A DNA stretch of 64,000 nucleotides, taken from sequence record MN159079.1. One strand, written 5' to 3'. Positions 5,391-54,823 of this stretch are shown piece by piece. The notes under the pieces were generated by a model. The model worked only from the letters and a program-made list of their open reading frames with translations, was not told where the DNA came from and searched no databases. Each line of letters begins with the position of its first letter. The stretch's first letter is position 1. Both the position numbers and the translations under genes were made by a program.

Positions 5391-6066
5391 TCGCTGGGAT
5401 TGGATACCGCTGACTCTCCGGTCAGTCTCCGGTTTCAACTCGTGCATCACGGTTGCTCTTACATCCGTTATCTTTATGGTCACCATTCGTGACGCTGTGT
5501 TAGCATCTACGATAGGGTGGTTCAATGGGGTCACTATCACCATCATGACGGTGGCTCCTATTGTTATTGCCTGGCATTTTACTAATGCTCGTGGTATGCT
5601 GGAAAAGGTTCTCAAGATGCCTCCATCCGAAGATGGGCTGGTAGAATCGGTTAAATCCGAAGTTCAATCAGCACATAACTCGCTTGGTAATCTCGAGACT
5701 TGTACAACTGAAGAATGTGATCAACACACCATCCCGCAAGGACTTGGTGTAATCACTGAGAGGGACGTCGGTATCGAACGTGAGATCTTTGGTTTCACAA
5801 CGGTACTCCTTAGGGCCATCGCTGGTTTCATCGCCTCCCATGCTATCTGTATGGGGAGTATCATTTATACCTTCACTATTCGTAGTGCTGTTATAACGGG
5901 TAAAGGGATGCCAGGGGATGTGGAAGTCTTTCTTGCAATCATCGGCCCTGTGATTACTAGCTGGAGCTTTATGCGTGCAGCTAATACGATCAGTGCATTG
6001 ATGACCGGGACAACCGCAGTGATTAAGATGCGGAAACGTATAGCGGAGTTAATTTCTCCAAAGTAA
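5356..6066 (+). CDS. Four-TM inner-membrane protein, holin candidate, 236 aa
   Basis: Two pairs of hydrophobic helices around a polar acidic loop, with basic N- and C-termini; convergent with the spanin pair. Holin function is inference. Confidence 0.5.
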   Translation: MIKRVKPQPRPDRWDWIPLTLRSVSGFNSCITVALTSVIFMVTIRDAVLASTIGWFNGVTITIMTVAPIVIAWHFTNARGMLEKVLKMPPSEDGLVESVKSEVQSAHNSLGNLETCTTEECDQHTIPQGLGVITERDVGIEREIFGFTTVLLRAIAGFIASHAICMGSIIYTFTIRSAVITGKGMPGDVEVFLAIIGPVITSWSFMRAANTISALMTGTTAVIKMRKRIAELISPK

Positions 6067-6069
6067 TAA

Positions 6070-6109
6070 AGACCCCCTACCCCGTCCTTTCGGATGGGGT
6101 AGGGGTTTT
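6070..6109. terminator. Bidirectional intrinsic terminator
   Basis: CCCCTACCCCGTCC-TTTC-GGATGGGGTAGGGG stem-loop with A-tract before and T-tract after, between convergent genes. Confidence 0.85.
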
Positions 6110-6119
6110 GTCAGTACAC

Positions 6120-6572
6120 TTATTTTTTCTTGACGTAGTCCTTGTTAAACTCGTCGATGATCTTATTAATGTTAATAATGAGCTGATCAATGGTACTCCT
6201 GAGGGCATTGATCGTTTCTGCGTCATTATCCAACTCTTTGGTTGTGGCAATAAGTATCAGTCGTGTCGAATTGTAACAAGCGTCTTTGGCAACGGTTTTG
6301 GTGCAGTCGTTTTGACTCAAGAATTGACCGAGTTGCTCCATCCTTGCTTGTTTAGGTTTCCATCCAGGGGAGTAAACCTCAGCAGGAATGAGAGTCAGGT
6401 CATCCTTCATTAACTGCAACTGATCTTTATAAAGCTGGAGCTTTGCCAGTTCCGTCTTCATCTCCACGTACGTGCCCGCTGCGGTTACTTTGGGCTGTGA
6501 GGCGCAACTGGTCATTATAAAGATCATCGAGAGGACTATTGCCATCCGACTCACTATATCCGTAAGTTTCAT
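6120..6572 (-). CDS. Outer-membrane lipoprotein, o-spanin (Rz1-like), 150 aa
   Basis: Re-called start at ATG 6572: MKLTDIVSRMAIVLSMIFIMTS-C-ASQP is a lipoprotein signal with a lipobox-like MTSC. The 5' end overlaps the i-spanin by 146 bp in another frame. Confidence 0.7.
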   Translation of the reverse strand: MKLTDIVSRMAIVLSMIFIMTSCASQPKVTAAGTYVEMKTELAKLQLYKDQLQLMKDDLTLIPAEVYSPGWKPKQARMEQLGQFLSQNDCTKTVAKDACYNSTRLILIATTKELDNDAETINALRSTIDQLIININKIIDEFNKDYVKKK

Positions 6573-8943: not shown

Positions 8944-11900
8944 ATGAATAGAATTGACGTTCCTTTATATTCCTTGGATCTCACAGGAGAATCTCCTTTC
9001 AATAGAGTAATCAGGGAAGAAGGTGTTCGTTCAAGTAACCAGTTGGTTATACCTAACGCAGCACCTTTCTACATTGATTCCGTGACCATAACTCATATGG
9101 ACGGAACACCAATGGACCTCGGAAAGGACTATGACTTCTATGGGATCCTGGCAAATCTCACAGAGTACACGGCAAAGTCGGTCGGGCTTTACATTCGTTT
9201 CCTGAATGATGATATCAAGGAATGGATAGTTAGTTATAACACCGTAGGTAACTTCAACAAGATTACCACGGAAATTCTGAACATGCTCAAAGCGATCACG
9301 GAGGACGATCGACCGGTACACTGGGATAACATAGACAACAAACCACTCTGGTTTGTTCCCGAGCTCCACCAACATGATTACACGTTCCATTTCTTCGGGT
9401 TTAGTGACCTGGCGAGAGAACTGCTCCGTGTTCAGCAATACAGCGCCCTTTTCAATGACGGTGTTCAGACCGATCTGGACATGTTCAACATGCGCCTGGA
9501 GAGCTACATATCCGAATACCAGGGGGTGTTGAATCGGCTTATAACACGCCACGACACCAGTAAGGCCGACCCTCACGGCGTCTGGAAGACGGACATCGGT
9601 CTTGACAACGTGGACAACTTTAAGACCGCAACCCTCCAAGAAACTCTGGAAGGACTTCGTGACGATCTCCACATCACTGTCAACAACGCAGCACAGGCAA
9701 TAGAAGTTAGTAACGAGAGACTTTTCCCTGCCGGGACACTCCCTTTACTCCGTTATGGTAACGATAGTTTCATCCCCCCGAAAATAGACGGTTCATTCGA
9801 GGGAATGGGTGGTTACAACTTTAGACTCGGTGTNNNNNNNNNNNNNNNNNNNNNNNNNNNNNNNNNNNNNNNNNNNNNNNNNNNNNNNNNNNNNNNNNNN
9901 NNNNNNNNNNNNNNNNNNNNNNNNNNNNNAAAGTTAGTAACGAGAGACTTTTCCCTGCCGGGACACTCCCTTTACTCCGTTATGGTAACGATAGTTTCAT
10001 CCCCCCGAAAATAGACGGTTCATTCGAGGGAATGGGTGGTTACAACTTTAGACTCGGTGTCGTACGTGAGAGTAGTGGGGAGATGGTCGCACTCCAACAT
10101 CGCAATGATGGTGTGGTCCGCGGACTCTACTTCCTGAAGTGTGATGACCCTTATGCCAAAAATCCCAACTGGTCGTATACCAGTTATCGGTACATTCACC
10201 CGACGGCTGTTGCCGACGGTGCCAACATTGACTCTGTGATCAATGGTAGTGGCCAGTATGTGTTGGTGATTGGGGACTCGGTTAAAGGAATTTGGTACTG
10301 GTGTGAAACCAACGGGACCCTGGATCCCTCTAAACACGTGCTCAAACGCATCTCTGGTGATTTCATCAATGTCAATCACGGGATGGGTCAATCACTCACC
10401 CTACTGGTTGATAGTGATTACGCTGACCAGTGGTTTATCATGGGCTCCATGACTAATTCCGAAGTTAAGGCAGCTAGACCTGACTATCCCACATCGGTTG
10501 AGACAGGTGGTGGTGACCGTAGTGTAGAGGCAATGAGATTCTTCTCTTGTATTGCGTCATCTACAGCCGTGAATCTCTGTACAGTGGATTTCACGGAGCA
10601 AGACGGTAAAACACCCAAGGATAAAATCTGGATGCCTTACACCAGAACCGTGGTAACTCCTAACACGATCACTGGTTATGAGGCGGAGTACGAAACCCCG
10701 GCAACGACTGTATGGAATTATCGCGGTATCCAGGGTATGTGTAAAAGGACGGCAGTACCGAGAGAGTACGCATTCCGTCTGTACAACTATATCTATCGGA
10801 TAGAGAAGACTACCGGCCTGGCTTCTGGTTCACGTCCTGTCTGGAAGGGGACATTGAAACTCGATCCGGCGACCAACACCGTAAAAGTACTCCCCGGTCC
10901 CGGTGAGAAACGATATCGGATCTCCATTAAACCGAATGACGATACCGGCGTTGAAAATGATCTCTTTGTAAACTGGAAGACGAGTTCTCTAGCCACGATC
11001 ACCGATGATGTTTCAAGAGGATATGCCGAATTCGACCATAACGGTAATGCGATATACGTATCTCCCGTTGTATCCGGATCGTTACCTGGGCAAGTGACCC
11101 TTTATAAAACAGACGCGCCACTAACTCCAGAAAGATTAATTGGTGCCAGGTCTGACTTTGACTATGTTGAGGTCAGCAAAACACCCATGCCGGAGGTTAA
11201 CCCTGCTGGGCTGGCTGTTGGACTCACGGAACCAATGTCAATTCTCGGAGACACCAATCGTCCTGAAACGGCTATTGTTCTCGGTACCCAACTCACTATG
11301 GAAAATGGCGAGATAAAAATAGAATGGATTGGTCGTCCCACCCCATTCATGAATCCTGACTGGACTGGTAACACTTCGTTACTCCAACCCATTACAATAG
11401 GTGGTGTTCAGGTTAAGGGGTACCCTCTGACACCGGAGACGTACACGTGTTCCATGGGGCCGTACAAGTTCTGGTCTTTACACGGTTTCTCAACGATACC
11501 GGAAGTTAGTAGTTCTGTAAGAGAACGCTGGACGAGGAGCTGTGGTGCCGATGGGATGGCGAACATCAATGGAACACCAACCTCCCAAACCGATTTCTTG
11601 TTCCCGAAGATTTGCCGGCACGAGATTGTTGGTAGGGAAGTCAGGATTATTCCCGTTGAAGTTTACAATGTCGAGAGTATGTTGTCCGGCCAGATCAAGA
11701 CTTATTTGGATGGAAAGGGGATAAATACAGAAACCATCAAAATGACTTGGACGATGAGCCCCGTTTACAACCGGAAGGGAGAAGAGCGTGTACTTCTCAT
11801 GGTTTCCAGTCGTAAGCCAGGTGACGGACTTCGCGATGTAGAAGCTATCGTTATGGTGGGTCAATTGAAAGGTGTTGGTAATCCGATTACCAAAGATGGT

Positions 11901-26437: not shown

Positions 26438-26461
26438 TTCAGATAGATATTATCCCAATGT
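26438..26461 (+). promoter_or_regulatory. Promoter-like motif copy 1 (probable early/virion-RNAP promoter)
   Basis: TTCAGATAGATATTATCCCAATGT; intergenic, after a terminator, upstream of a plus-strand operon. Confidence 0.7.
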
Positions 26462-36902: not shown

Positions 36903-36926
36903 TTTGGATAGATATTATCATAGTGT
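36903..36926 (+). promoter_or_regulatory. Promoter-like motif copy 2
   Basis: TTTGGATAGATATTATCATAGTGT, intergenic. Confidence 0.7.
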
Positions 36927-39501: not shown

Positions 39502-39525
39502 TTCAGATAGATATTATCAGAGTGT
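39502..39525 (+). promoter_or_regulatory. Promoter-like motif copy 3
   Basis: TTCAGATAGATATTATCAGAGTGT; just downstream of a terminator. Confidence 0.75.
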
Positions 39526-44376: not shown

Positions 44377-44778
44377 ATGAAAAAGTTTATGGCTGTGGTA
44401 ACGATGTTGTTGATCGCATTCGGTATGTACTTCGTTTACAAAGTAGCTGAAGTCTACCAGGAACCTGTCGAGGCCCGCGGTAAACTTATCGAATGTTACA
44501 TTGATGGTGAGGTGACTGTAAACCCCGCTTACAAATGTGACTACAATGTAGGTGATGGTAAACATTACACCATCGAGATCTCTCGTCAGGATTGGAGAAA
44601 GGAATACTTCCGGGTTGGCCATGAGCGCGATCTTCGTATCTATAACGATAACGTAGATGCGGTGATTATCATAGCCGCCATTTTGGAACTGTTCCTTTTC
44701 CTGTTCTTCCTTGCGATGTTTTGGACCTTGACCAGGTCTGAACCCAAAGAGGTAACTGCACGATGGAGAGAAGGATAA
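44377..44778 (+). CDS. Two-TM membrane protein with a small extracytoplasmic beta domain, 133 aa
   Basis: Hydrophobic N-terminal (FMAVVTMLLIAFGMYFVY) and C-terminal (VIIIAAILELFLFLFFLAMFW) helices. Confidence 0.65.
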   Translation: MKKFMAVVTMLLIAFGMYFVYKVAEVYQEPVEARGKLIECYIDGEVTVNPAYKCDYNVGDGKHYTIEISRQDWRKEYFRVGHERDLRIYNDNVDAVIIIAAILELFLFLFFLAMFWTLTRSEPKEVTARWREG

Positions 44779-44939
44779 TGCTCATTGCTGGGGTGATCTC
44801 GATCATGATCGCCTTGGCTTTCTTTATCGATATCGTCGGGCTGATCAAGTCAGGTAACATCGGTAGCGAATTAGGCTGGCTCATACTTGGAGGTTTCTCC
44901 ATGGGGCTAATTGGTATTAAACTGTTAGACGAGGTATAA
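44778..44939 (+). CDS. Small two-TM protein, 53 aa (below the ORF-track cutoff)
   Basis: MLIAGVISIMIALAFFIDIVGLIKSGNIGSELGWLILGGFSMGLIGIKLLDEV; TAATG coupling upstream and fills the gap exactly. Confidence 0.65.
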   Translation: MLIAGVISIMIALAFFIDIVGLIKSGNIGSELGWLILGGFSMGLIGIKLLDEV

Positions 44940-45467: not shown

Positions 45468-45986
45468 ATGAACAACATTACAGTTGCCCAACTGAAAGCT
45501 CACCTCAAGTCAGCAGTGGTGAGATTCCTGGAAACCGACATGATCTCTCACGGTGACGAGATCATTTCCAAGATGACCGTCAAGAACCCTCCCAAGGGCG
45601 TGATGTCATACGGGTCGATCGTATTCGACTTAACCGAGAAAGCTATACCCTACGCCCCATCCCGGACCATCACGGCGAGCTTCGATAGCGCTGACATGTA
45701 TGGCGACATGGATAAAGCCGTAGAAGATGCTGTCTTCCAATACCTCAACAACGTTGGTGCGGAATCCATCGCTCTGATTCCTGGTCACGAAGTGGTCAAG
45801 AGTGGGGTCGGGTTTGAAGTGACGGTGAGGGATGGTGACATCATCCTGTACAACGCCTCCATGAAAGTTCCGGCTAACATGAAGGAAGGGTTGGACGCTG
45901 CCTTTGATCAAGCCGTTGATCTGGCCATGGTGGTCAAATACAAACGGATGGTTTCCGATCGTAGTTTCGACAGCGTGGTAATCTGA
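45468..45986 (+). CDS. Hypothetical protein, 172 aa
   Basis: SD AAGGA. Confidence 0.65.
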   Translation: MNNITVAQLKAHLKSAVVRFLETDMISHGDEIISKMTVKNPPKGVMSYGSIVFDLTEKAIPYAPSRTITASFDSADMYGDMDKAVEDAVFQYLNNVGAESIALIPGHEVVKSGVGFEVTVRDGDIILYNASMKVPANMKEGLDAAFDQAVDLAMVVKYKRMVSDRSFDSVVI

Positions 45987-45995
45987 CAATAATAC

Positions 45996-46030
45996 AAACC
46001 CCCTTACTCCCTCTTGGGAGTAAGGGGTTG
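45996..46030. terminator. Bidirectional intrinsic terminator
   Basis: AACCCCCTTACTCCC-TCTT-GGGAGTAAGGGGTT between convergent genes. Confidence 0.85.
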
Positions 46031-46039
46031 TCACTAACT

Positions 46040-46393
46040 TTATTTCTTTCCTTTATAATGGCTTTCGCCACCAACCCTAACAGCTACATACATGAGCTGG
46101 TAATAACGCCACGACAGTTTGAGTCGAACCTCCATGTTGTATTTAAACAACTTGTCCGCTTCTTCACGACTCCACATCCCGGTTGCGTACATATAGTCAT
46201 GCACTAGGGCTGCTGGGAGGTACGTGTGAAATGAGGGATAGAAGGATTGTAACGCTCTTCCTGTGCTGGCGCCATTACTCCTGAATCCCTTAGGGACTGT
46301 GCATTCTGGCGTGACATAGTCTTCTAATAAGACCATTGTACCGTTGGTATAGTCGAACTCTACCTTAGGTTTGGCAAATACGAACTCTGACAT
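46040..46393 (-). CDS. DUF1353-family protein, 117 aa
   Basis: VPKGF.SNGAS, AALVHDYMY, SREEADKLF and MYVAVRVGG match the DUF1353 pattern. Confidence 0.75.
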   Translation of the reverse strand: MSEFVFAKPKVEFDYTNGTMVLLEDYVTPECTVPKGFRSNGASTGRALQSFYPSFHTYLPAALVHDYMYATGMWSREEADKLFKYNMEVRLKLSWRYYQLMYVAVRVGGESHYKGKK

Positions 46394-46421
46394 AATGACC
46401 TCTATTTAATGTGCAAATGAT

Positions 46422-46445
46422 TTCAGAGGTATATTATCTTAGTGG
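46422..46445 (+). promoter_or_regulatory. Promoter-like motif copy 4
   Basis: TTCAGAGGTATATTATCTTAGTGG, 32 bp upstream of the ATG at 46478. Confidence 0.7.
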
Positions 46446-46477
46446 ATAAACTAATTTAATTTTTGTGAGGACTTATT

Positions 46478-47488
46478 ATGTTACCCATTATTGTTGGTGG
46501 TATCGCTCTGGCTGCAATCTTCGGTGGTAAGAAAGCATATACCGGACACAGGAAGAATGAAAGTGCTGAGGAATTGTTCACACTATCAGAGACTTGCCGA
46601 GTAGAGAGTGAAGAGAGTATTAAGCGCTCATCTGAATCACTGGATGAACTCATCAACAACTATACGTTGTTCTGTTCTGAATTTGGGAAGGAGATTAATT
46701 CCTTTACTATATTGGCTAAAGAAGTAACCGGCGTTCCTGTCACTGAGCTTAACCTGAACATTAAGTATGATGACCTGGTTATTGCAACCAACTACGGTGA
46801 AGTTGCTAAGGGTATCGCGACAACAATTTCAGGTGGTGTGCTCACTGGCGCACTGATGGGGTTCGGTGGTTGGGGGAGTATGTTGTCTCTAGGTGTCGCT
46901 AGTACAGGCACACCCATTTCCGCGTTAGCTGGTGCGTCAGCTACCAACGCAGCCCTGGCTGCATTTGGTGGTGGTAGTCTGGCTACTGGCGGGTTGGGTA
47001 TCGCCGGCGGTGTAGCCAGTCTGTCTGGAATCACTGTTGTTCCCGCTCTGGCAGCAATGGGTTGGAAATATGACCGTGACGCCACCGCTAAATTAGATAG
47101 CGCACTTAATGTGGCCGAGGCCGCTTTAGAATTGCGCGAGAATGCCAAGAAGCTCGATACGTTCGTTACCGAATTAGAAGAGTACATCGGTTTGGTAATG
47201 ACTGCGTTAACCAGAATCCGCGAAATCTTTGGTGAATACCACGAAGCACTGCGTAATCTCGATATTCTTATAAAAGAACGTCGGGTAAACGAAATCGTGG
47301 AAGACGAAGAAAAGCGCATCATTTCGAACGCAATGAACCTGGGCCAGATCGCAGCCAAGATCATGACCACACCTCTGCTGGTCACTGAAACTGTAGACAA
47401 CGAGCTTGTCATCAAGAAGAATGATGACGATCTCCCTGAAATAAATTGTGATGGTTTCATGGCTATAATGGAAAATACCAATCCCTAA
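46478..47488 (+). CDS. Membrane protein with an ASTGT...GGGSLA.GG Gly/Ala hydrophobic hairpin flanked by coiled coils, 336 aa
   Basis: N-terminal hydrophobic segment, coiled coil, motif A141-STGTPISALAGASATNAALAAFGGGSLATGGLGIAGG, second coiled coil. I recall this motif from widespread uncharacterised bacterial proteins. Confidence 0.75.
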   Translation: MLPIIVGGIALAAIFGGKKAYTGHRKNESAEELFTLSETCRVESEESIKRSSESLDELINNYTLFCSEFGKEINSFTILAKEVTGVPVTELNLNIKYDDLVIATNYGEVAKGIATTISGGVLTGALMGFGGWGSMLSLGVASTGTPISALAGASATNAALAAFGGGSLATGGLGIAGGVASLSGITVVPALAAMGWKYDRDATAKLDSALNVAEAALELRENAKKLDTFVTELEEYIGLVMTALTRIREIFGEYHEALRNLDILIKERRVNEIVEDEEKRIISNAMNLGQIAAKIMTTPLLVTETVDNELVIKKNDDDLPEINCDGFMAIMENTNP

Positions 47489-47499
47489 TAGGAGCAAAT

Positions 47500-49074
47500 A
47501 TGCAAACTCAAACTTATGATTGGACTGGTGAGTTCAACAAAATGATGGTAAACAGTCTGATCACAACGTTTGGGTTAGACCCAATGTTGTTTGATGACAA
47601 ACGAGGTGGTAACGTCACCACTCTCCACAATGTTCGTTCTGAAGGTCTTGTGGCTGGAGAACATCATCGTGAACTGATAGCGAATAAGCCAGAGTATGAC
47701 GCGCACGCCGCTCATAACGTTAAGGAATTCCTTGACGCTAAAGCCGAACTCAAGGTATTGCGTAAAAGCGGGGTAGAGATCCAAGATGCTTACTCGGATC
47801 AAATCCTTAACAATTCCAGAACTGACCTGGATCACATCGTCTCTGCTAAGGCGATTGATGCAGATCCGGCAAGAATCATTTCTGGATTGAACGTGGGTGA
47901 ACTTGCCGCTATAGAGGAAAACCTCACTCCTACCTCTGCGAGCATTAACCGTTCTAAAGGTGCTGATTCCGCTGATGAGTTCGAGAAGCGTATTAAACGT
48001 GATCAGAAAGTCAGGGATAAGTTCAGAGCGAGTATCGCTGGGAGAACAGATCTCTCCAAGGAAGAACAGCAAACCCTTAATCTTTACGATCAACAAGAGA
48101 TGATCGATTTCGATAAGATGCGGGAGCTTGAAGCAAAGGCCAATAACGCTCGTCAACGTAAAGAGGACGATGCTTATTATGCGAGTGTTGACTTTGCCAA
48201 GCACACAATCAAGGACGCCGGTATCAGCGGTGTAAAGAACGGGACCAAGTTGGTACTCGGCACTTTGTTCACTGAACTCTGGTTTGAACTTAAAGCAGGT
48301 ATCCCCGAGATCTATAAGAAACATTCCGGACATTTCGTTCTCGTTAACTTTATGTCTGATGTTCGTGATCTCCTGGATAAATGCTGGGAACGGATCATGG
48401 TTAAGATAGCTGAGGTTCCGGCGTTGTTTATGAACGGCTTGTTCTCTGGTGTAATTACCAGTGTAACAACCACCGTAGTTAACAAGGCCACCACTACCGT
48501 TAAGCTCTTTGGTCGTTTCTTCAGAACGATCTTTGACGCCATTATCGCCAGTATCAAAATGATTGTCTTCCCGCCAGCAGGTATGAAGGTTAGCGAACGC
48601 GCACAAGGTGTTGTGAACATCCTGTCAGTAGCAATCGCTGGGTGCGTAGGGATCGCCGTTAATGGTGCTGTAAATGCCAGTTACACAGGTCCCTTCGCAG
48701 AAGAGGTCGGCCTCTTCCTGGGCATGCTGGCCACTGGTATTGTAACTATTACTTGTGGCTATTTCATTAACCATTCACCAACAGTTCAAAAGTTCTGGAA
48801 TTTCTTCAACCACTTCAAATCAACAGAGGTGCAAACTCTCGAACATACTAACATGCTTAATGAGAAGCTAAATAAGTTGTTCGAGGATATCGCTGAAGTT
48901 GAAATGGGGCTGGATGCAGAAGAACTTTCACAGTTTGTTTCATCCTTGCGTGGAAGCAGTACTGAATCTGATCGCACTCAAGTACTGAAAGTACAGATCG
49001 AGAAGATGGGTATTGACTCACCATTCATCCCAGGAGATATCGAATCCATCGATTCCTGGTTAGCAACACTTTAA
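47500..49074 (+). CDS. HNH-like nuclease motif + multi-TM C-terminal domain protein, 524 aa
   Basis: DLDH112IVS...EN141LTPTSASIN150RSKG is an H-N-N (beta-beta-alpha-metal) pattern. The C-terminal half has 3-4 hydrophobic helices. SD AGGAG, 11 bp after the upstream stop. Confidence 0.65.
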   Translation: MQTQTYDWTGEFNKMMVNSLITTFGLDPMLFDDKRGGNVTTLHNVRSEGLVAGEHHRELIANKPEYDAHAAHNVKEFLDAKAELKVLRKSGVEIQDAYSDQILNNSRTDLDHIVSAKAIDADPARIISGLNVGELAAIEENLTPTSASINRSKGADSADEFEKRIKRDQKVRDKFRASIAGRTDLSKEEQQTLNLYDQQEMIDFDKMRELEAKANNARQRKEDDAYYASVDFAKHTIKDAGISGVKNGTKLVLGTLFTELWFELKAGIPEIYKKHSGHFVLVNFMSDVRDLLDKCWERIMVKIAEVPALFMNGLFSGVITSVTTTVVNKATTTVKLFGRFFRTIFDAIIASIKMIVFPPAGMKVSERAQGVVNILSVAIAGCVGIAVNGAVNASYTGPFAEEVGLFLGMLATGIVTITCGYFINHSPTVQKFWNFFNHFKSTEVQTLEHTNMLNEKLNKLFEDIAEVEMGLDAEELSQFVSSLRGSSTESDRTQVLKVQIEKMGIDSPFIPGDIESIDSWLATL

Positions 49075-49093
49075 ACCAATTGAGGTAACTACC

Positions 49094-49552
49094 ATGAAAA
49101 AGATTATTATCGCTAGCGCTTTTGTATTTGGTTCATTTGCAGTTCAAGCCGCTGACGTAGCCGTGTTGGGTGGTGGGATGTCCTATCACTTCAAACATGA
49201 AGGTCAGAACCAGGTACATCCCAGCATCGGGGTACAGATCGATAACTTCTCCGTTCTGTACACCACCAAGAATTCCATTGAACTCCCGTCCCTCCAGGTA
49301 GCTTATGGCGACAACTTCTTTGAATCCAAAGTTGTTGACTTCGGATATCGGGTTGGGCTTGCCACTGGGTATCGTAAAGGACACAAGTACAGTAACGGTG
49401 AATACTACTACGATGGGCACGAAATCGGAAACACTGGACTTCTCCCTCTGGTGACCATCACCACCACCATCCACACCCCAATCCCCAAACTTGACTTGGT
49501 CGCTGATACAGCACCTAACGTAGTAATGTTTGGTTTTAAATACAACCTGTAA
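49094..49552 (+). CDS. Small outer-membrane beta-barrel, PagP-like family, 152 aa
   Basis: Sec signal MKKIIIASAFVFGSFAVQA; SYH32F, N60S61, GLATGY and LP motifs, amphipathic strands and a C-terminal FGFKYNL beta-signal-like end. Confidence 0.65.
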   Translation: MKKIIIASAFVFGSFAVQAADVAVLGGGMSYHFKHEGQNQVHPSIGVQIDNFSVLYTTKNSIELPSLQVAYGDNFFESKVVDFGYRVGLATGYRKGHKYSNGEYYYDGHEIGNTGLLPLVTITTTIHTPIPKLDLVADTAPNVVMFGFKYNL

Positions 49553-49562
49553 GGAGTTAACT

Positions 49563-49793
49563 ATGTCTATTCTGGAAATGATCGCACTGGCTTGCAGCCT
49601 GTTTGTCATCGCTGTGTCGTTCATCGCGATATACCATATCAACAGAATGAAGAACCTCTGCTACAACGATTACGTTGTTCGTGGCGAGATCTGGAGGGTC
49701 AGACTGGTGGCTTGGTCCATCAATGCGTTCCTTCTGATCAGTGTTCTCAGACTGGTCATGTCGATTTGGATCTATTTCAGCAAAATGTTCTGA
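49563..49793 (+). CDS. Small two-TM membrane protein, 76 aa
   Basis: SD AAGGAG before ATG 49563; two hydrophobic helices. Confidence 0.65.
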   Translation: MSILEMIALACSLFVIAVSFIAIYHINRMKNLCYNDYVVRGEIWRVRLVAWSINAFLLISVLRLVMSIWIYFSKMF

Positions 49794-49869: not shown

Positions 49870-50691
49870 ATGAAAACTCTGCCTAATGAATTCCTGAAAG
49901 TAAACCCGATCGCAAGCCAAGTCATCCCGCTCTACTTTGAAGATGCGTGGAACATGAACTCCCAGGGTTCTTGGAAGATCAATGGACGTCATGACGATGT
50001 CGGTTACGACGTCGAGATCGTTCACGCCCTGGGCTCTGTAATCGTCCGTGGGACGTTTGGACACAATGTTGGTGTCATCACCATGCCCCGGAACAACATG
50101 GCTAAAATGGCCATTGGAGAGACTATGGTGCAGGCAGTTGTCAATCTCGACAACTCACGTCTCTGTACCGAAGCCAACCCCCAGTCCAAAGATAAGATCC
50201 TGGCTCTGTTCGACGCCGCGTTCTCCCGGGCCAAGCGCGAGGTCAACTACTTCAAAGCAAGTAACGCCGGCTACAAGGGTGCTGATCTGATGCGTCAAGC
50301 CGAGTTCATCGGCTTGGGTGCGATTCTGACCCGACTGATTGCGAACCGGAAGATCTCCATGGGTGACTTCGAAGTACTCACCATGAGTGGTTGGGAGATT
50401 GATTTCGATCGCATGACCGAAATCAACGAAGGCAAAGTTGGTCTCTTCGATGCCCCGGCTATCATCCTTCGTTCGACCGCGAAGGTGGATATCCACGTCA
50501 CTCTCAAGGCGACAGGTACTATTATAGTCTCCTTGATAGAACAGGCTGAAGGTGAGGTCATTCACCGGACAACTCTCCCCATGGGAGTATGTGATCAGAT
50601 CACCGGTACTCATTCCTCGTTGAATGAGAACTGCACCAGCATGTTCGTGGAACTCTCCAAGTATATTTTAGGGGGTAAGAACAGGAGTTAA
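49870..50691 (+). CDS. Hypothetical protein, 273 aa
   Basis: SD AAGGA. Confidence 0.65.
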   Translation: MKTLPNEFLKVNPIASQVIPLYFEDAWNMNSQGSWKINGRHDDVGYDVEIVHALGSVIVRGTFGHNVGVITMPRNNMAKMAIGETMVQAVVNLDNSRLCTEANPQSKDKILALFDAAFSRAKREVNYFKASNAGYKGADLMRQAEFIGLGAILTRLIANRKISMGDFEVLTMSGWEIDFDRMTEINEGKVGLFDAPAIILRSTAKVDIHVTLKATGTIIVSLIEQAEGEVIHRTTLPMGVCDQITGTHSSLNENCTSMFVELSKYILGGKNRS

Positions 50692-50693
50692 CC

Positions 50694-51062
50694 GTGAAAC
50701 CCATCAGGATCAATCCGAGAGCTCAAGCGATTAACGTGGACTACCTGCCCACGCCAAAGCAATTGGAAGAATGGCACGATGAAGATGCGGTCATTAATCA
50801 TCTAGCCAAGAAAGTATTAACAAAGTGGTATCAAGTACCTGCCAATAAGGTAGAGAAAGATAAAGCATTGTTATTCCTTCCGCAGGGTAAGTTGTACGAC
50901 ACACTTATTCCGAAGATGGGAATCAACAAGAGGGATGCGTTTAACCATATGGTGATCGTCCATGGGATGACAGAACCTGGTTCTCTGCAACTTCACTTGA
51001 TGATGTACTTTCTTTGTAAGTGGTTCACCAAGAGTTCTCTAAGAACTTATTCTGAAGCCTAA
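50694..51062 (+). CDS. Hypothetical protein, 122 aa
   Basis: GTG start, SD AGGAG. Confidence 0.6.
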   Translation: MKPIRINPRAQAINVDYLPTPKQLEEWHDEDAVINHLAKKVLTKWYQVPANKVEKDKALLFLPQGKLYDTLIPKMGINKRDAFNHMVIVHGMTEPGSLQLHLMMYFLCKWFTKSSLRTYSEA

Positions 51063-51505: not shown

Positions 51506-54500
51506 ATGAAACTGTCTAACATCGCAATGATTATCGGGGCCGCTTTCGCCTCAGTGTCCTTCACCGCTTCGGCGGTAAAAGACCCGAACAAATACGGTCA
51601 AGATAACCACTACATCATGCTGGACATTATGCAAGTGGAAAGCGAGGTTAACTCCCTCGAATGGAAAATGGACAACCAAAAGGTTGACCTGTCCAATCTG
51701 ACTGGTCGTGTCGATACCAATGAAGCGGATATCGCTGAACTCAAGCAAACCGCTGATCAGGTTGATGGTGTGATCAATTATGTCACCAACAACCGTGAAG
51801 AGATCCAGGCCAAGTTCCAAAAGGAAGTTAACAACAGTGTGAATAACTACGTTGTTAACAACCAGGCTGGTTTCGATGCTCACATTCAGAAGGTTGTAGA
51901 AGGAACCATGGCCGACAACCCCGCTGTCGATCTGGATCCGATCAATCAACAACTCGCTCAGAACTCCAAGGACATCGAACGTCAGGAAAAACTCATCCGT
52001 GATGAGAAATCCAAGATGGATGGCGTATCCACCATCATGTTCGGTGGTAAAGCCACCACCAATGAAAACGGTACGTTCGTTGGATTCCAGCGTGAAGAAA
52101 GTGGCCAGCTGGTAGTCGGTCCTAACGGTGAACTCTACGGTTACAAAGAGAACGCTGGTCTGTACGGTCGCTACCGTCTCTTCGAAGACGCCACTAATGC
52201 AGAGTTGGGTCGCCTGGATAAGGTGAAAGCCAATAAGGACGATCTCATCGCTCTGGATAGCCGGGTTGAAGTTGTTGAAGGTGATGTTGCTGTGATCAAT
52301 GGCAAGATCGAAAAGGTTGAACGTGTTGGAGGTAAAATTGCTGCCAATGTTGACGTTATCGTTGACAAGGGTAACAGTGTTATCGAAGGTGCTAAGACCA
52401 GCATCAACAACAGCATCGACAACAAGATCGAAATCGCCAAGGGTGAAGTTAATACCCAGATCGACAACTCCATCACTAACATTGTGAACGGTGGTAACAC
52501 CGAGATCAATGCCAAGTGGGAAGGTGCCAAGGCCACCGCTAACGATTTCGACGAGCGGATCACCGCTAACAAGAATCGTATCGATGACCAAGCCGGTCGT
52601 ATTGGTAAGGTTGAAGATCTCAGTGCTCAGAACGCCAAAGATGTCAAAGCAGCTAACAAAGAACTTGTCCGTCTGGACAATGTCAAAGCTGACAAGACTG
52701 ACCTGGACGCTCTGGGTGGTCGTGTTGACGTAATCGAAGGTGACGTAGCCACCATCAATGGTAAGATCGAGAAGGTTGAAGGTAACAAAGACCTGATCAT
52801 CTCCAAGGTTGGCGATGCGTACACCAATGTACGTACCGACATCACCAACGAGATCAACAGCACTGTAACCGGTGCAATTGATGTTGCGATTGACAATGCC
52901 AAAACCACTGTGAACAACAAGTGGGAAGAAAACAAAGGTGATATCGTTGCCAATGTTAACGGCAAAGTCGAGAACATCCAAAATGACATCACCAACAACG
53001 TGATGAACCAAATTGGTGACATCGTAATTGATGGTAACAGCGAAACCGTTATCAACATCAAGAACGACATTACCAAGGATGTAACCAACCAACTCAAACT
53101 CGATGGCAAGGGCGTTGCTCTGAACATCAAGAAAGAGATTCAGGAAGGTAACAACGACATCTACAACAACATCTCCGGTAAGATCGAAGGTAAGTTCGAT
53201 GATCAGTACGCTACCCTGGTAGCTATGGGTCAGGCTGAATCCGATCGTCTGGAAGCTAAGAAGGCTGACAAAGCAGATCTCGATGCCGCTGTACAAGCTG
53301 GTAAAGATGAAGCTGCCAACATCAATGCTTCTATTGGTGCAATGGGTGACCGTGTAACCAATGTTGAAGGTGACGTGTCCAACATCAAGCAGGATGTAAC
53401 TAACATCCAAGGTGATATCACCACTATCCAAGGTGACGTTGCTAACATCAACGGCAAAATCTCTTACGTCGAAAACAACAGCCAGGAAATCATCAACAAG
53501 GCTGGTGCTGCTGTAGACGCCAAGATCGATGTTGCTTACGAAGGTGCCAAGACCGAAGTGACCAATCTGTACGACAATGCTCGTACCGAAATCACTAACG
53601 AAATTGACAACGCCGTAAACGTTGCTGTGGAAGGTGCTCGTACTGAAGTTAACAACAAGTACGAAACCATCAAGAACGAAGTCGTTAACGGTGATAACAA
53701 CACCTACAATTCCATCAAGGCTGACATCAGCAAAGATGTGAAGAACGAAATCGTCAACAACATCACTGAAGGTAACAATACCGTTGTAAACGAAATCAAA
53801 GATGGTCTGGTTGAAGAAATCCGCGAAGAAGGTAAAACTGTCGTAGTGGATCTCCAAGACCAAATCGATGCGGCTAACGCACGTATCGATGTACAGACCG
53901 GTCGTGGTGAGCAGGCTTGGGCTTCCTATCAAGAAGACCGTGCGTATGCCACCCAGCAGTATACCCAGGATCGTCAAGTTGCCGTAACCACTTACAACAA
54001 CGCCCGCGTTGAAGCTGAAAGTGCTTATGTTACTATGGATGATAAGAAAGCCGACAAGTCCGATCTGGATGTATTGAATGACAAAATCGATGGTGTCGCT
54101 GCCAACGGTAAAACCGACGAAGAAATCAAGGCTATCGCAGACCAAGCTGCTGCTGACGCTGTAAACAATGCCAAGAAAGAAGTCGTCGTGGCTGTTAAAG
54201 ACAAAGCTCCTGTAGTTAACGAAGCTGTAACCGCTGCTAAGACCGAAGCTAAGAAGCAGGTACAAGCTAGCATTGATGCGTCCATCTCCAAAGCGAAAGC
54301 CGCCGCTAAAGACCAAGCTGGTCAGGCTGTTGCTGCTGCTAAAGAGAAAGCACGTGCTGAGCTGGCCGCTGCCATGCCTGAGCTGAAAGGTAAAGCAGAA
54401 GTTGTTCGTACCGAAGCTGTTGAAACCCGCAAGCGTGCTGACCTGGCCCTGAAAGCCACCCAGGACAACCACACTGCAATTCAACAAGAGCGTGCTGATC

Positions 54501-54823
54501 GTATCCAAGGTCAGCGTGAGACTCTGCAATCTGCCAACAACTACACTGATCAGAAAGTTGAACAACTGCGTGGTGAAGTCGAGCATAACCGTCGTAAGGC
54601 TGCCGCTGGTATCGCTGGCGTGGCTGCAATGACCAACATCCCGACTATCTCCCAAGGTAAGAACTTCGCGATTGGTGCTGGTATGGGTTACTACGATGGC
54701 GAGCAATCCCTGGCTATCGGTTCCCAAGGTCGTTTCAACGAGAACCTCACTGGTAAAGCAACTATCTCCACCGACTTCCACGGCAACACTGTAATTGGTG
54801 CTGGCGTAGGTTTCGAGTGGTAA
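51506..54823 (+). CDS. Trimeric autotransporter adhesin (YadA/Eib-like), 1105 aa
   Basis: Sec signal (…SFTASA), Asn/Ile-rich coiled-coil stalk with internal repeats (LD.VKA.K.DL.AL..RV.V.EGDV..INGKIEKVE twice, more degenerate copies later), ANNYTDQK, and a YadA anchor AAAGIAGVAAM...GAGMGYYDGEQSLAIG...GAGVGFEW. Confidence 0.92.
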   Translation: MKLSNIAMIIGAAFASVSFTASAVKDPNKYGQDNHYIMLDIMQVESEVNSLEWKMDNQKVDLSNLTGRVDTNEADIAELKQTADQVDGVINYVTNNREEIQAKFQKEVNNSVNNYVVNNQAGFDAHIQKVVEGTMADNPAVDLDPINQQLAQNSKDIERQEKLIRDEKSKMDGVSTIMFGGKATTNENGTFVGFQREESGQLVVGPNGELYGYKENAGLYGRYRLFEDATNAELGRLDKVKANKDDLIALDSRVEVVEGDVAVINGKIEKVERVGGKIAANVDVIVDKGNSVIEGAKTSINNSIDNKIEIAKGEVNTQIDNSITNIVNGGNTEINAKWEGAKATANDFDERITANKNRIDDQAGRIGKVEDLSAQNAKDVKAANKELVRLDNVKADKTDLDALGGRVDVIEGDVATINGKIEKVEGNKDLIISKVGDAYTNVRTDITNEINSTVTGAIDVAIDNAKTTVNNKWEENKGDIVANVNGKVENIQNDITNNVMNQIGDIVIDGNSETVINIKNDITKDVTNQLKLDGKGVALNIKKEIQEGNNDIYNNISGKIEGKFDDQYATLVAMGQAESDRLEAKKADKADLDAAVQAGKDEAANINASIGAMGDRVTNVEGDVSNIKQDVTNIQGDITTIQGDVANINGKISYVENNSQEIINKAGAAVDAKIDVAYEGAKTEVTNLYDNARTEITNEIDNAVNVAVEGARTEVNNKYETIKNEVVNGDNNTYNSIKADISKDVKNEIVNNITEGNNTVVNEIKDGLVEEIREEGKTVVVDLQDQIDAANARIDVQTGRGEQAWASYQEDRAYATQQYTQDRQVAVTTYNNARVEAESAYVTMDDKKADKSDLDVLNDKIDGVAANGKTDEEIKAIADQAAADAVNNAKKEVVVAVKDKAPVVNEAVTAAKTEAKKQVQASIDASISKAKAAAKDQAGQAVAAAKEKARAELAAAMPELKGKAEVVRTEAVETRKRADLALKATQDNHTAIQQERADRIQGQRETLQSANNYTDQKVEQLRGEVEHNRRKAAAGIAGVAAMTNIPTISQGKNFAIGAGMGYYDGEQSLAIGSQGRFNENLTGKATISTDFHGNTVIGAGVGFEW

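Follow-up and report, generated by a model that had tools for sequence, protein, structure and literature searches.

A predicted membrane-nuclease gene pair related to a candidate bacterial defence family in the jumbo Aeromonas phage D9

Four closely spaced genes for membrane proteins in Aeromonas phage D9 raise the question of whether they form a single system, where they came from and what a phage would gain from carrying them. The window analysed here is a stretch of 64,000 nucleotides from the sequence record of D9 (MN159079), a jumbo phage of 260 kb classified in the genus Ludhianavirus; window position 46400 corresponds to position 232400 of the record. The locus lies on the + strand and comprises gene i (D9_0255, 46478-47488, an open reading frame (ORF) of 336 amino acids (aa)), gene ii (D9_0256, 47500-49074, 524 aa), gene iii (D9_0257, 49094-49552, 152 aa) and gene iv (D9_0258, 49563-49793, 76 aa, with its ATG at 49563), all of which are carried in the record as coding sequences (CDS) for hypothetical proteins. 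An earlier note, made by a model from the sequence of the window, had described them as one promoter-driven, four-gene membrane cassette of bacterial origin built around a protein with an HNH motif. Comparative analysis shows that genes i and ii are a phage-carried version derived from a candidate defence family.

Genes i and ii and their bacterial module

Regarding the layout of the locus, the ORF calls agree with the earlier description of four co-oriented genes with Shine-Dalgarno sites and tight spacing (given there as 11-19 bp and observed as 10-19 bp, the spacers between genes i-ii, ii-iii and iii-iv being 11, 19 and 10 bp). The Shine-Dalgarno-like sequences GAGGA, AGGAG, GAGGT and AAGGAG precede the starts of genes i, ii, iii and iv, respectively, and hydropathy analysis gave membrane features for all four products, as had been claimed. 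The four-gene block is kept in the phages D3, D6 and LAh10 at 97-99% identity. The ratio of nonsynonymous to synonymous substitution rates (dN/dS) between D9 and LAh10 is 0.063 for gene i, 0.046 for gene ii, 0.063 for gene iii and 0.17 for gene iv, and because of this range of 0.046-0.17 and the absence of stop codons all four genes can be taken to be maintained by selection; for genes i and ii, with values of about 0.05, purifying selection is strong.

A survey of 50,697 phage genomes placed the pair in these four Ludhianavirus phages alone, which bears out the earlier statement that the two genes do not belong to the phiKZ core set. The 7.5 kb around the pair is genus-specific, the DNA-level match in AerS_266 and ZPAH34 being limited to a neighbouring DUF1353 gene. 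In IMG/VR, one relative of gene ii was seen at a short contig end (locus L091; 61% guanine-cytosine (GC) content, 5644-6418) with no gene-i homologue upstream, and this copy may be prophage-end cargo.

Both genes have relatives in bacteria. For gene i, 386 homologues were detected, mainly bacterial proteins of ~366 aa, many of which are named 'chemotaxis protein'; the sole trace of such a function was an MCPsignal match at E 0.01 in one of 30 homologues. The gene-ii family gave few matches by word search, and 690 clusters (50% identity) at E<=1e-30 were retrieved from 1.84 billion representatives with a profile. RefSeq calls a gene-ii homologue 'cobalamin adenosyltransferase', a name backed by no significant domain match. 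A scan of GTDB species genomes yielded 264 gene-ii loci in Gamma- and Betaproteobacteria, Clostridia, Bacteroidota, Campylobacterota, Spirochaetota and others, including one Aeromonas species (L034).

In the bacterial loci inspected first, the order of genes is a WYL regulator, the gene-i homologue, the gene-ii homologue and a gene for a 94-97-aa CxxCxxCC protein (PF03692, YkgJ). A survey with hidden Markov models (HMMs) distinguished two layouts, WYL, i, ii and CxxCxxCC in Proteobacteria and an optional WYL followed by ii, CxxCxxCC and i in Clostridia, Bacteroidota and Treponema. Of the 54 bacterial loci that extend 1.5 kb or more to either side of gene ii, 52 have gene i beside it and 47 have a CxxCxxCC gene; the earlier suggestion that the two genes occur as a neighbouring, often mis-annotated pair in bacteria is thus correct. 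The CxxCxxCC proteins score above the Pfam cut-off and were matched by no PADLOC model. In the Escherichia coli loci (L092-L094), this gene is present after the gene-ii homologue (HMM E 1e-39 to 1e-42; ~11713-12000 in L092 and L093) and has been left unannotated.

WYL-regulated defence operons of the BrxR/CapW type exist, and the bacterial module resembles them in having a WYL(+WCX) helix-turn-helix regulator directly upstream in 35 of the 54 loci; the phage copy differs in having no WYL gene in the window and a phage promoter motif instead. The module was found on 57 plasmids and also in chromosomal integrative islands. Its neighbours include McrBC and a type I restriction-modification system; an E. 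coli tRNA-Phe island carries it together with a KwaB-like gene and HamA/helicase (Hachiman and Kiwa context) and a CP4-like island carries it together with an integrase, AlpA and antirestriction genes. The 148 immediate flanking genes at 41 loci include type I restriction endonuclease, GmrSD, SspE, MkoC, MADS and HEC-06 genes amid housekeeping genes. From these contexts the defence association of the bacterial module appears, circumstantially, strong.

Similarly, matches to PADLOC models link the phage proteins to defence. The match of gene ii to PDC-M40B (PDLC04630; 9.7e-31) covers most of the protein (aa 14-419, aligned to positions 22-429 of the 547 in the model), both PDC-M09A models are matched by gene i (PDLC04407 at 1.3e-16 and PDLC04406 at 1.9e-12), and the bacterial homologues match the PDC-M09A and PDC-M40B models at similar strength. 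These scores are those of related families, not of the same ones, and the phage version differs further in that only two genes remain, in a phage that is lytic; the PDC-M40A model matched none of the phage proteins or bacterial module proteins. PDC-M09 and PDC-M40 are unpublished PADLOC candidates, and the earlier statement that the locus could not be matched to a named defence system has to be qualified with regard to these models.

The bacterial module varies in its composition. Distant gene-i homologues are paired with TerB-like proteins or with a non-HNH membrane protein of 510 aa, and one gene-ii homologue is paired with a shorter protein combining Gly-zipper and TerB-like parts in place of gene i; such altered gene-i or gene-ii partners and TerB links are found at L004 (5760-6410), L064/L081, L095 (3347-5999) and L100 (1953-6005). 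These variants suggest that the modules belong to a wider family with a link to TerB; the system is modular, with gene i as its more constant part. Among individual loci, the Snodgrassella alvi copy (L063, 5859-8579) has each of its module genes broken into two ORFs and is probably pseudogenised, and two tandem gene-i paralogues occur at L054 (8746-10844). Genes with a PAAR motif lie directly 3' of the module at several Morganellaceae loci (L008-L010, Providencia and Enterobacterales, ~11300-11740), which may be a coincidence or a link to cargo regions of type VI secretion systems or Rhs elements.

Regarding the origin of the phage copies, gene ii falls inside the Gamma- and Betaproteobacterial set of its family tree with a support of 99 in the Shimodaira-Hasegawa-like approximate likelihood ratio test (SH-aLRT), and gene i is nearest to Gammaproteobacteria. 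The phage order of i then ii is the proteobacterial layout, consistent with this placement, and the bacterial origin proposed earlier gains support from the position of the phage copies on the proteobacterial side of both families. The phage genes sit at the tips of terminal branches 1.7 and 3.8 long, where the medians are about 0.2; no bacterial homologue is more than about 33% identical to them, and their GC content equals the phage background. On these grounds a recent transfer from the host was rejected. Because of the long branches, the low identity and the ameliorated GC content, the capture must be old or have been followed by fast divergence. Of the positions with a bacterial conservation of 90% or more, phage gene ii retains 50 of 67 and gene i retains 32 of 41, including every residue of the HNH motif and the ASTGT...GGG core.

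The further members of the bacterial module are the CxxCxxCC protein and the WYL regulator, not genes iii and iv as a four-gene system would have it, and both are absent from the window: an HMM search of six-frame ORFs of at least 40 aa in the 64-kb window gave no match to CxxCxxCC (PF03692) or WYL. As read from the gene content, the phage would have kept two membrane or enzymatic parts, dropped two parts that are likely regulatory and substituted a promoter of its own, and its copy is in this respect a natural experiment on which two parts can do without the other two. The bacterial module itself is defined here as a widespread, mobile and uncharacterised one (690 clusters at 50% identity, at least 264 species, several phyla, islands and plasmids) with an unusual architecture combining a membrane-anchored predicted HNH nuclease, a pore-toxin-like glycine-zipper protein, a Cys-cluster protein and a WYL regulator.

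Predicted architecture of the two proteins

The presence of an HNH-type (His-Me finger) nuclease domain in gene ii is likely, as judged from its invariant residues and predicted fold. HNH domains are recognised by a general-base His that ends the first strand, usually with an Asp before it, an Asn after the hairpin and an Asn or His metal ligand in the next helix. The AlphaFold2 model of gene ii has a mean predicted local distance difference test score (pLDDT) of 76 and reaches about 90 across aa 70-230, a region including the HNH-type domain (aa 88-172; 47761-48015, + strand), in which D111-H112 closes the predicted strand 108-112, N141 lies ahead of strand 142-146 and N150, S152 and K153 lie in helix 147-153. 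This is a beta-beta-alpha arrangement with a helical insert, predicted at a pLDDT of about 90. D111, H112, N141, N150, S152 and K153 are invariant across the gene-ii family, so that the H112-N141-N150 pattern described as intact is indeed so, and the invariance of the DH pair was found in alignments of 12, 25 and 82 sequences. Further invariant features are an upstream GGNVTT-x-HN motif and D96.

Of the Pfam families, HNH_4 matches nine of 25 gene-ii family members (best E 0.0019, 16 bits vs a 22-bit cut-off), and GH-E and GmrSD_C match two members each below cut-off; no other family recurs for the domain. The endonuclease VII family phrog_1035 matches gene ii at 0.0069. Local Foldseek matches were obtained to the HNH domain of Cas9, Gme HNH and viral HNH/GmrSD_C proteins with probabilities of up to 0.99 but E >0.2, and a PDB profile search with the HNH domain gave nothing. 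Gene ii accordingly resembles HNH and His-Me finger nucleases (Cas9-type HNH_4, GmrSD_C/BrxU) in its D-H...N...N pattern, its predicted beta-beta-alpha fold and its weak family and local fold matches, but differs from them in a helical insert of 29 residues between the His and the first Asn, in the GGNVTT-x-HN motif and in its membrane anchor, and no curated threshold was reached. From the conserved residues we infer nuclease activity for this protein.

The membrane region of gene ii (aa 306-425; 48415-48774, + strand) is delimited by hydropathy, helices of the model and the conserved residues N328, P359, G413 and Y421. Two strong transmembrane (TM) helices (369-387 and 405-423) flank an acidic loop and are preceded by weaker hydrophobic helices (309-327 and 344-362), and long helices connect the nuclease domain to this hydrophobic anchor. 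Judging from how charges are distributed around the two strong TM helices, both the HNH domain and the C-terminus would lie on the cytoplasmic side. The C-terminal helical module of gene ii was considered as a paralogue of gene i and rejected (hhalign probability 3.8%), so that the two genes are not related to one another.

Gene i has a short hydrophobic N-terminal helix and a Gly/Ala-rich hydrophobic stretch at aa 109-193 (46802-47056, + strand; hydropathy segments 109-127, 158-176 and 175-193). This 'glycine-zipper' region is the most conserved section of the gene-i family, with ASTGT...GGGSLA.GG.G.A as its invariant core in the family alignment, and has a pLDDT <50 in the monomer model. In the AlphaFold2 model, helices 4-84 and 187-268 form a long helical hairpin, and the hydrophobic part between them is modelled at low confidence. 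With its long antiparallel helical tail and hydrophobic head, gene i looks, in this model, like a membrane-inserting helical protein of the ClyA type.

The earlier likening of gene i to alpha-pore-forming proteins stands in part. XaxA-family models match 10 of 30 gene-i family members (best E 0.0025) and the NheB model two of 30 (best E 6.3e-7), both below threshold; the NheC model matches gene i at E 0.006 with 15.9 bits vs a cut-off of 420; and Foldseek returned ClyA, AhlB and SmhB at E 0.07-0.3 (TM-score about 0.2), with MakA also among the non-significant matches. No Pfam alpha-pore-forming match and no significant sequence or fold match to the ClyA superfamily was obtained for gene i, and PDB profile searches with gene i, full-length gene ii and the HNH-domain alignments gave coiled-coil or ATP-synthase-b noise alone. 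Because the matches to alpha-pore-forming toxins recur but stay sub-threshold, the likeness is read as an architectural analogy, not as membership. Gene i differs from members of this superfamily (ClyA, XaxA/YaxA, NheB/C, AhlB/SmhB, MakA) in its far longer hydrophobic region (about 85 aa) with an invariant glycine-zipper motif; it is apparently cytoplasmic and would act on the inner membrane of its producer, and its partner is a predicted nuclease, not a second toxin subunit.

Promoter and possible roles of the pair

Alignment of the regions upstream of the window genes yielded the motif TTCAGATAGATATTATCnnAGTG, of which four copies are present in the window (26438, 36903, 39502 and 46422) vs 0 expected by chance, all intergenic, on the + strand and upstream of genes. 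The copy ahead of gene i, TTCAGAGGTATATTATCTTAGTG (46422-46444, + strand), has the core TATATTAT-(6N)-G and a predicted start at G46444, 33 nt ahead of the gene i ATG; it is the most diverged of the four, yet identical in LAh10. The core KATATTAT-(6N)-G, i.e. (G/T)ATATTAT-(6N)-G, retrieves exactly the same four sites vs 0.58 expected, while an over-strict 16-mer search returned the query copy alone and k-mer counting gave no exact repeats. A sigma-70 scan of the 84-bp spacer upstream of gene i found no such site. The mapped early promoter of the virion RNA polymerase (RNAP) of AR9, a phiKZ-related phage, is AAATATATATTAT-(6N)-G(+1) (PMC5312081), with the 3' half of which the window core motif agrees. 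Given four recurrent upstream sites and a core of the AR9 type, 46422-46444 is read as a probable early promoter of the virion-RNAP type starting at G46444, in keeping with the earlier claim that a phage promoter motif heads the cassette.

Ludhianavirus was transferred by ICTV in 2025 to the nucleus-forming family Chimalliviridae, so that the assumption of a nucleus-forming phage made earlier is justified. Taking the origin, the predicted architecture and the promoter together, the reading that we favour, tentatively and as a real possibility short of a probable one, is that genes i and ii provide an early membrane-anchored HNH nuclease and its partner, derived from a defence module, which attack unshielded DNA while the phage genome is enclosed. 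A Ludhianavirus ancestor would have captured the proteobacterial i-then-ii form of the defence-island module, the WYL and CxxCxxCC genes would subsequently have been lost and the pair would have been put behind an early promoter of the virion-RNAP type. Soon after injection both proteins would be made and inserted into the host inner membrane, gene ii with its HNH domain toward the cytoplasm and gene i as a partner that either gates or activates gene ii or perturbs the membrane itself. The tethered nuclease would then cut DNA exposed at or near the membrane, chiefly that of superinfecting or co-infecting phages on entry and perhaps also the host nucleoid. The DNA of the phage itself would be spared through its enclosure, initially by the injection vesicle and later by the chimallin nucleus. 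Genes iii and iv would be separate envelope morons on the shared transcript. What DNA the pair would target and how the phage would profit are matters of inference, for which an attack on unshielded DNA or the exclusion of superinfecting phages is a plausible answer.

This reading has parallels among known systems. Zorya and Kiwa have inner-membrane components coupled to DNA-targeting activity near the entry site; the module is similar in outline, and in E. coli adjoins a KwaB-like gene, but genes i and ii are unrelated in sequence to ZorA-D and KwaAB and here the nuclease itself would be membrane-anchored. Imm and Sp of T4 are phage superinfection-exclusion functions, and an intron-encoded HNH endonuclease of a phiKZ-like phage is a precedent for the use of an HNH nuclease between competing jumbo phages. 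The pair resembles these in being a phage-encoded, early-type function that could act on competing genomes, and differs in belonging to another protein family, in its origin from a bacterial defence module, in its membrane tether and in being neither site-specific nor homing. The phage copy links the module to genome shielding in nucleus-forming phages, in which an unregulated cytoplasmic nuclease would be tolerable, and if the proposed role is true it would give insight into competitor exclusion by chimalliviruses, into the function of this defence family and into the design of Aeromonas phage cocktails.

Several points weigh against this reading. All matches to HNH and alpha-pore-forming families fall below curated thresholds, and full-length Foldseek searches of PDB and BFVD with genes i and ii gave nothing significant except the LAh10 orthologue. 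The defence-island association was counted without a formal background control and remains circumstantial, and a literature search found no description of the module or the phage genes and no validation of PDC-M09 or PDC-M40. The early timing of genes i and ii is drawn by analogy with the promoter of another phage. The CxxCxxCC protein is near-universal in the bacterial module and absent here; should activity depend on it, the pair in the phage has to operate in another way. Branches as long as those of the phage genes (1.7 and 3.8) would allow neofunctionalisation. Finally, the constancy of gene i across the variant systems could make gene i, not the nuclease, the effector.

The favoured reading can be extended to the bacterial module, which would then be a new form of 'gate-keeper' immunity in which an HNH nuclease of the inner membrane and a ClyA-like glycine-zipper partner destroy foreign DNA at entry; the phage would have taken the two effector genes alone and expressed them from an early promoter, affordable in unregulated form as its genome is never exposed to the cytoplasm. 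We regard this extension as doubtful. If it is true, D9 and its relatives would be the first case in which a phage that forms a compartment has turned a host defence nuclease into a weapon to exclude superinfecting phages.

Host takeover is an unlikely alternative, in which the tethered nuclease and gene i would degrade or nick the host chromosome or collapse the membrane potential early in infection, leading to shut-down of the host and the release of nucleotides, with the exclusion of competitors being incidental. The intact HNH-type motif, the membrane anchoring, the early-type promoter and the shielded genome fit takeover as they fit the favoured reading, and some chimalliviruses do degrade host DNA. 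However, the pair is genus-specific, which does not suggest a takeover function of the whole family, the anti-phage contexts of the bacterial relatives point to incoming DNA as the target, and a membrane tether is odd for digesting an entire nucleoid.

It is less likely still that gene i is the effector, acting as a ClyA-like intracellular pore that permeabilises the inner membrane while the HNH domain of gene ii serves as a DNA-binding sensor or trigger. The outcome would be abortive infection in bacteria and, in the phage, depolarisation that blocks further injections or sets the timing of lysis. Gene i stays constant while its partners vary (TerB-like proteins or the non-HNH 510-aa membrane protein), matches to XaxA, NheB, NheC and the ClyA/AhlB/SmhB fold recur and the Gly-zipper core is its most conserved feature, all of which would suit such a role. 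Against this, all 82 bacterial homologues and the phage protein share the catalytic-type residues of gene ii without exception, which argues for catalysis beyond binding alone, every alpha-pore-forming match is sub-threshold and the cassette has no match to an endolysin or spanin.

A single envelope-spanning machine made by all four genes, in which a barrel in the outer membrane and a 2-TM adaptor would join the pair in the inner membrane, is improbable in view of what is found for genes iii and iv. The tight spacing, the co-orientation, the envelope direction of all four products and their joint conservation in four phages would be expected of such a machine. Gene iii, for which hydropathy analysis gave a signal peptide, has homologues in 47 phage records, in unrelated phages of Aeromonas, Vibrio and Stenotrophomonas without genes i and ii. 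Gene iv, with two TM helices and no family matches, is found in Ludhianavirus phages alone, without relatives outside the genus. Neither gene has a homologue in the bacterial modules (HMM survey of the fetched loci), and the neighbourhood is generally full of small membrane-protein morons. Given these distributions, the four-gene system of the earlier note has to be given up: what the locus holds is a captured pair of genes, next to which two membrane genes without relation to it probably share the transcript. Gene iii is an independent phage envelope moron outside the captured module, encoding a secreted small protein that is probably located in the outer membrane. The name in its earlier description as a PagP-like outer-membrane barrel is not borne out, since PagP is a PHROG label alone (phrog_3600, 3e-29); as an identity it is unsupported, with no Pfam or NCBIfam match at E<=1 and no PagP chain in a PDB sequence search at E<=10. 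The misleading names 'chemotaxis protein', 'cobalamin adenosyltransferase' and 'PagP' are thus corrected.

An anti-defence decoy, in which the phage copies would poison the assembly of a host module as dominant-negative forms, is hardly credible: an Aeromonas species does carry the bacterial module and the phage copies are without its regulatory parts, but the catalytic-type residues and the entire conserved core, which a decoy would not need, are under strong purifying selection, and an identity of at most about 33% to any bacterial homologue is poor for co-assembly.

Transcription unit and neighbouring genes

Downstream of gene iv, two further co-oriented genes (273 and 122 aa; 49870-51062, + strand) have no significant family matches. 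Neither a terminator-like site on the + strand nor a copy of the motif was found between 49793 and 51062, and because no such terminator follows gene iv the transcription unit may extend through these two genes to 51062, which may thus be co-transcribed with genes i-iv. A reading of genes i-iv as a lysis cassette was rejected, endolysin and spanin not having been found among the family matches.

Regarding the other copies of the motif, the one at 26438-26460 (+ strand) heads a gene group of which the next gene is transglycosylase/tail-fibre-like (phrog_4067), and those at 36903-36925 and 39502-39524 (both + strand) head gene groups of unassigned function.

Upstream of gene i and divergent from it lies the DUF1353 gene (46040-46393, - strand; PF07087, 6e-16), which carries the PHROG label 'tail assembly chaperone'. 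Between this gene and a convergent gene at 45468-45986 (+ strand), a GC-rich hairpin at 46000-46027 with a 12-bp stem containing eight GC pairs is probably a terminator. Two small predicted membrane proteins of 133 and 58 aa, both with hydrophobic helices, are encoded at 44377-44939 (+ strand), and the stretch of 44-51 kb holds many small genus-specific genes for membrane proteins.

Further downstream, the gene at 51506-54823 (+ strand) encodes a protein of 1105 aa that resembles trimeric autotransporters, with an N-terminal signal peptide, long repetitive coiled coils and a C-terminal YadA anchor (PF03895, 2.9e-14). Its LAh10 orthologue is annotated as YadA-like, and an adhesin-type outer-membrane protein is an unusual cargo for a lytic jumbo phage.

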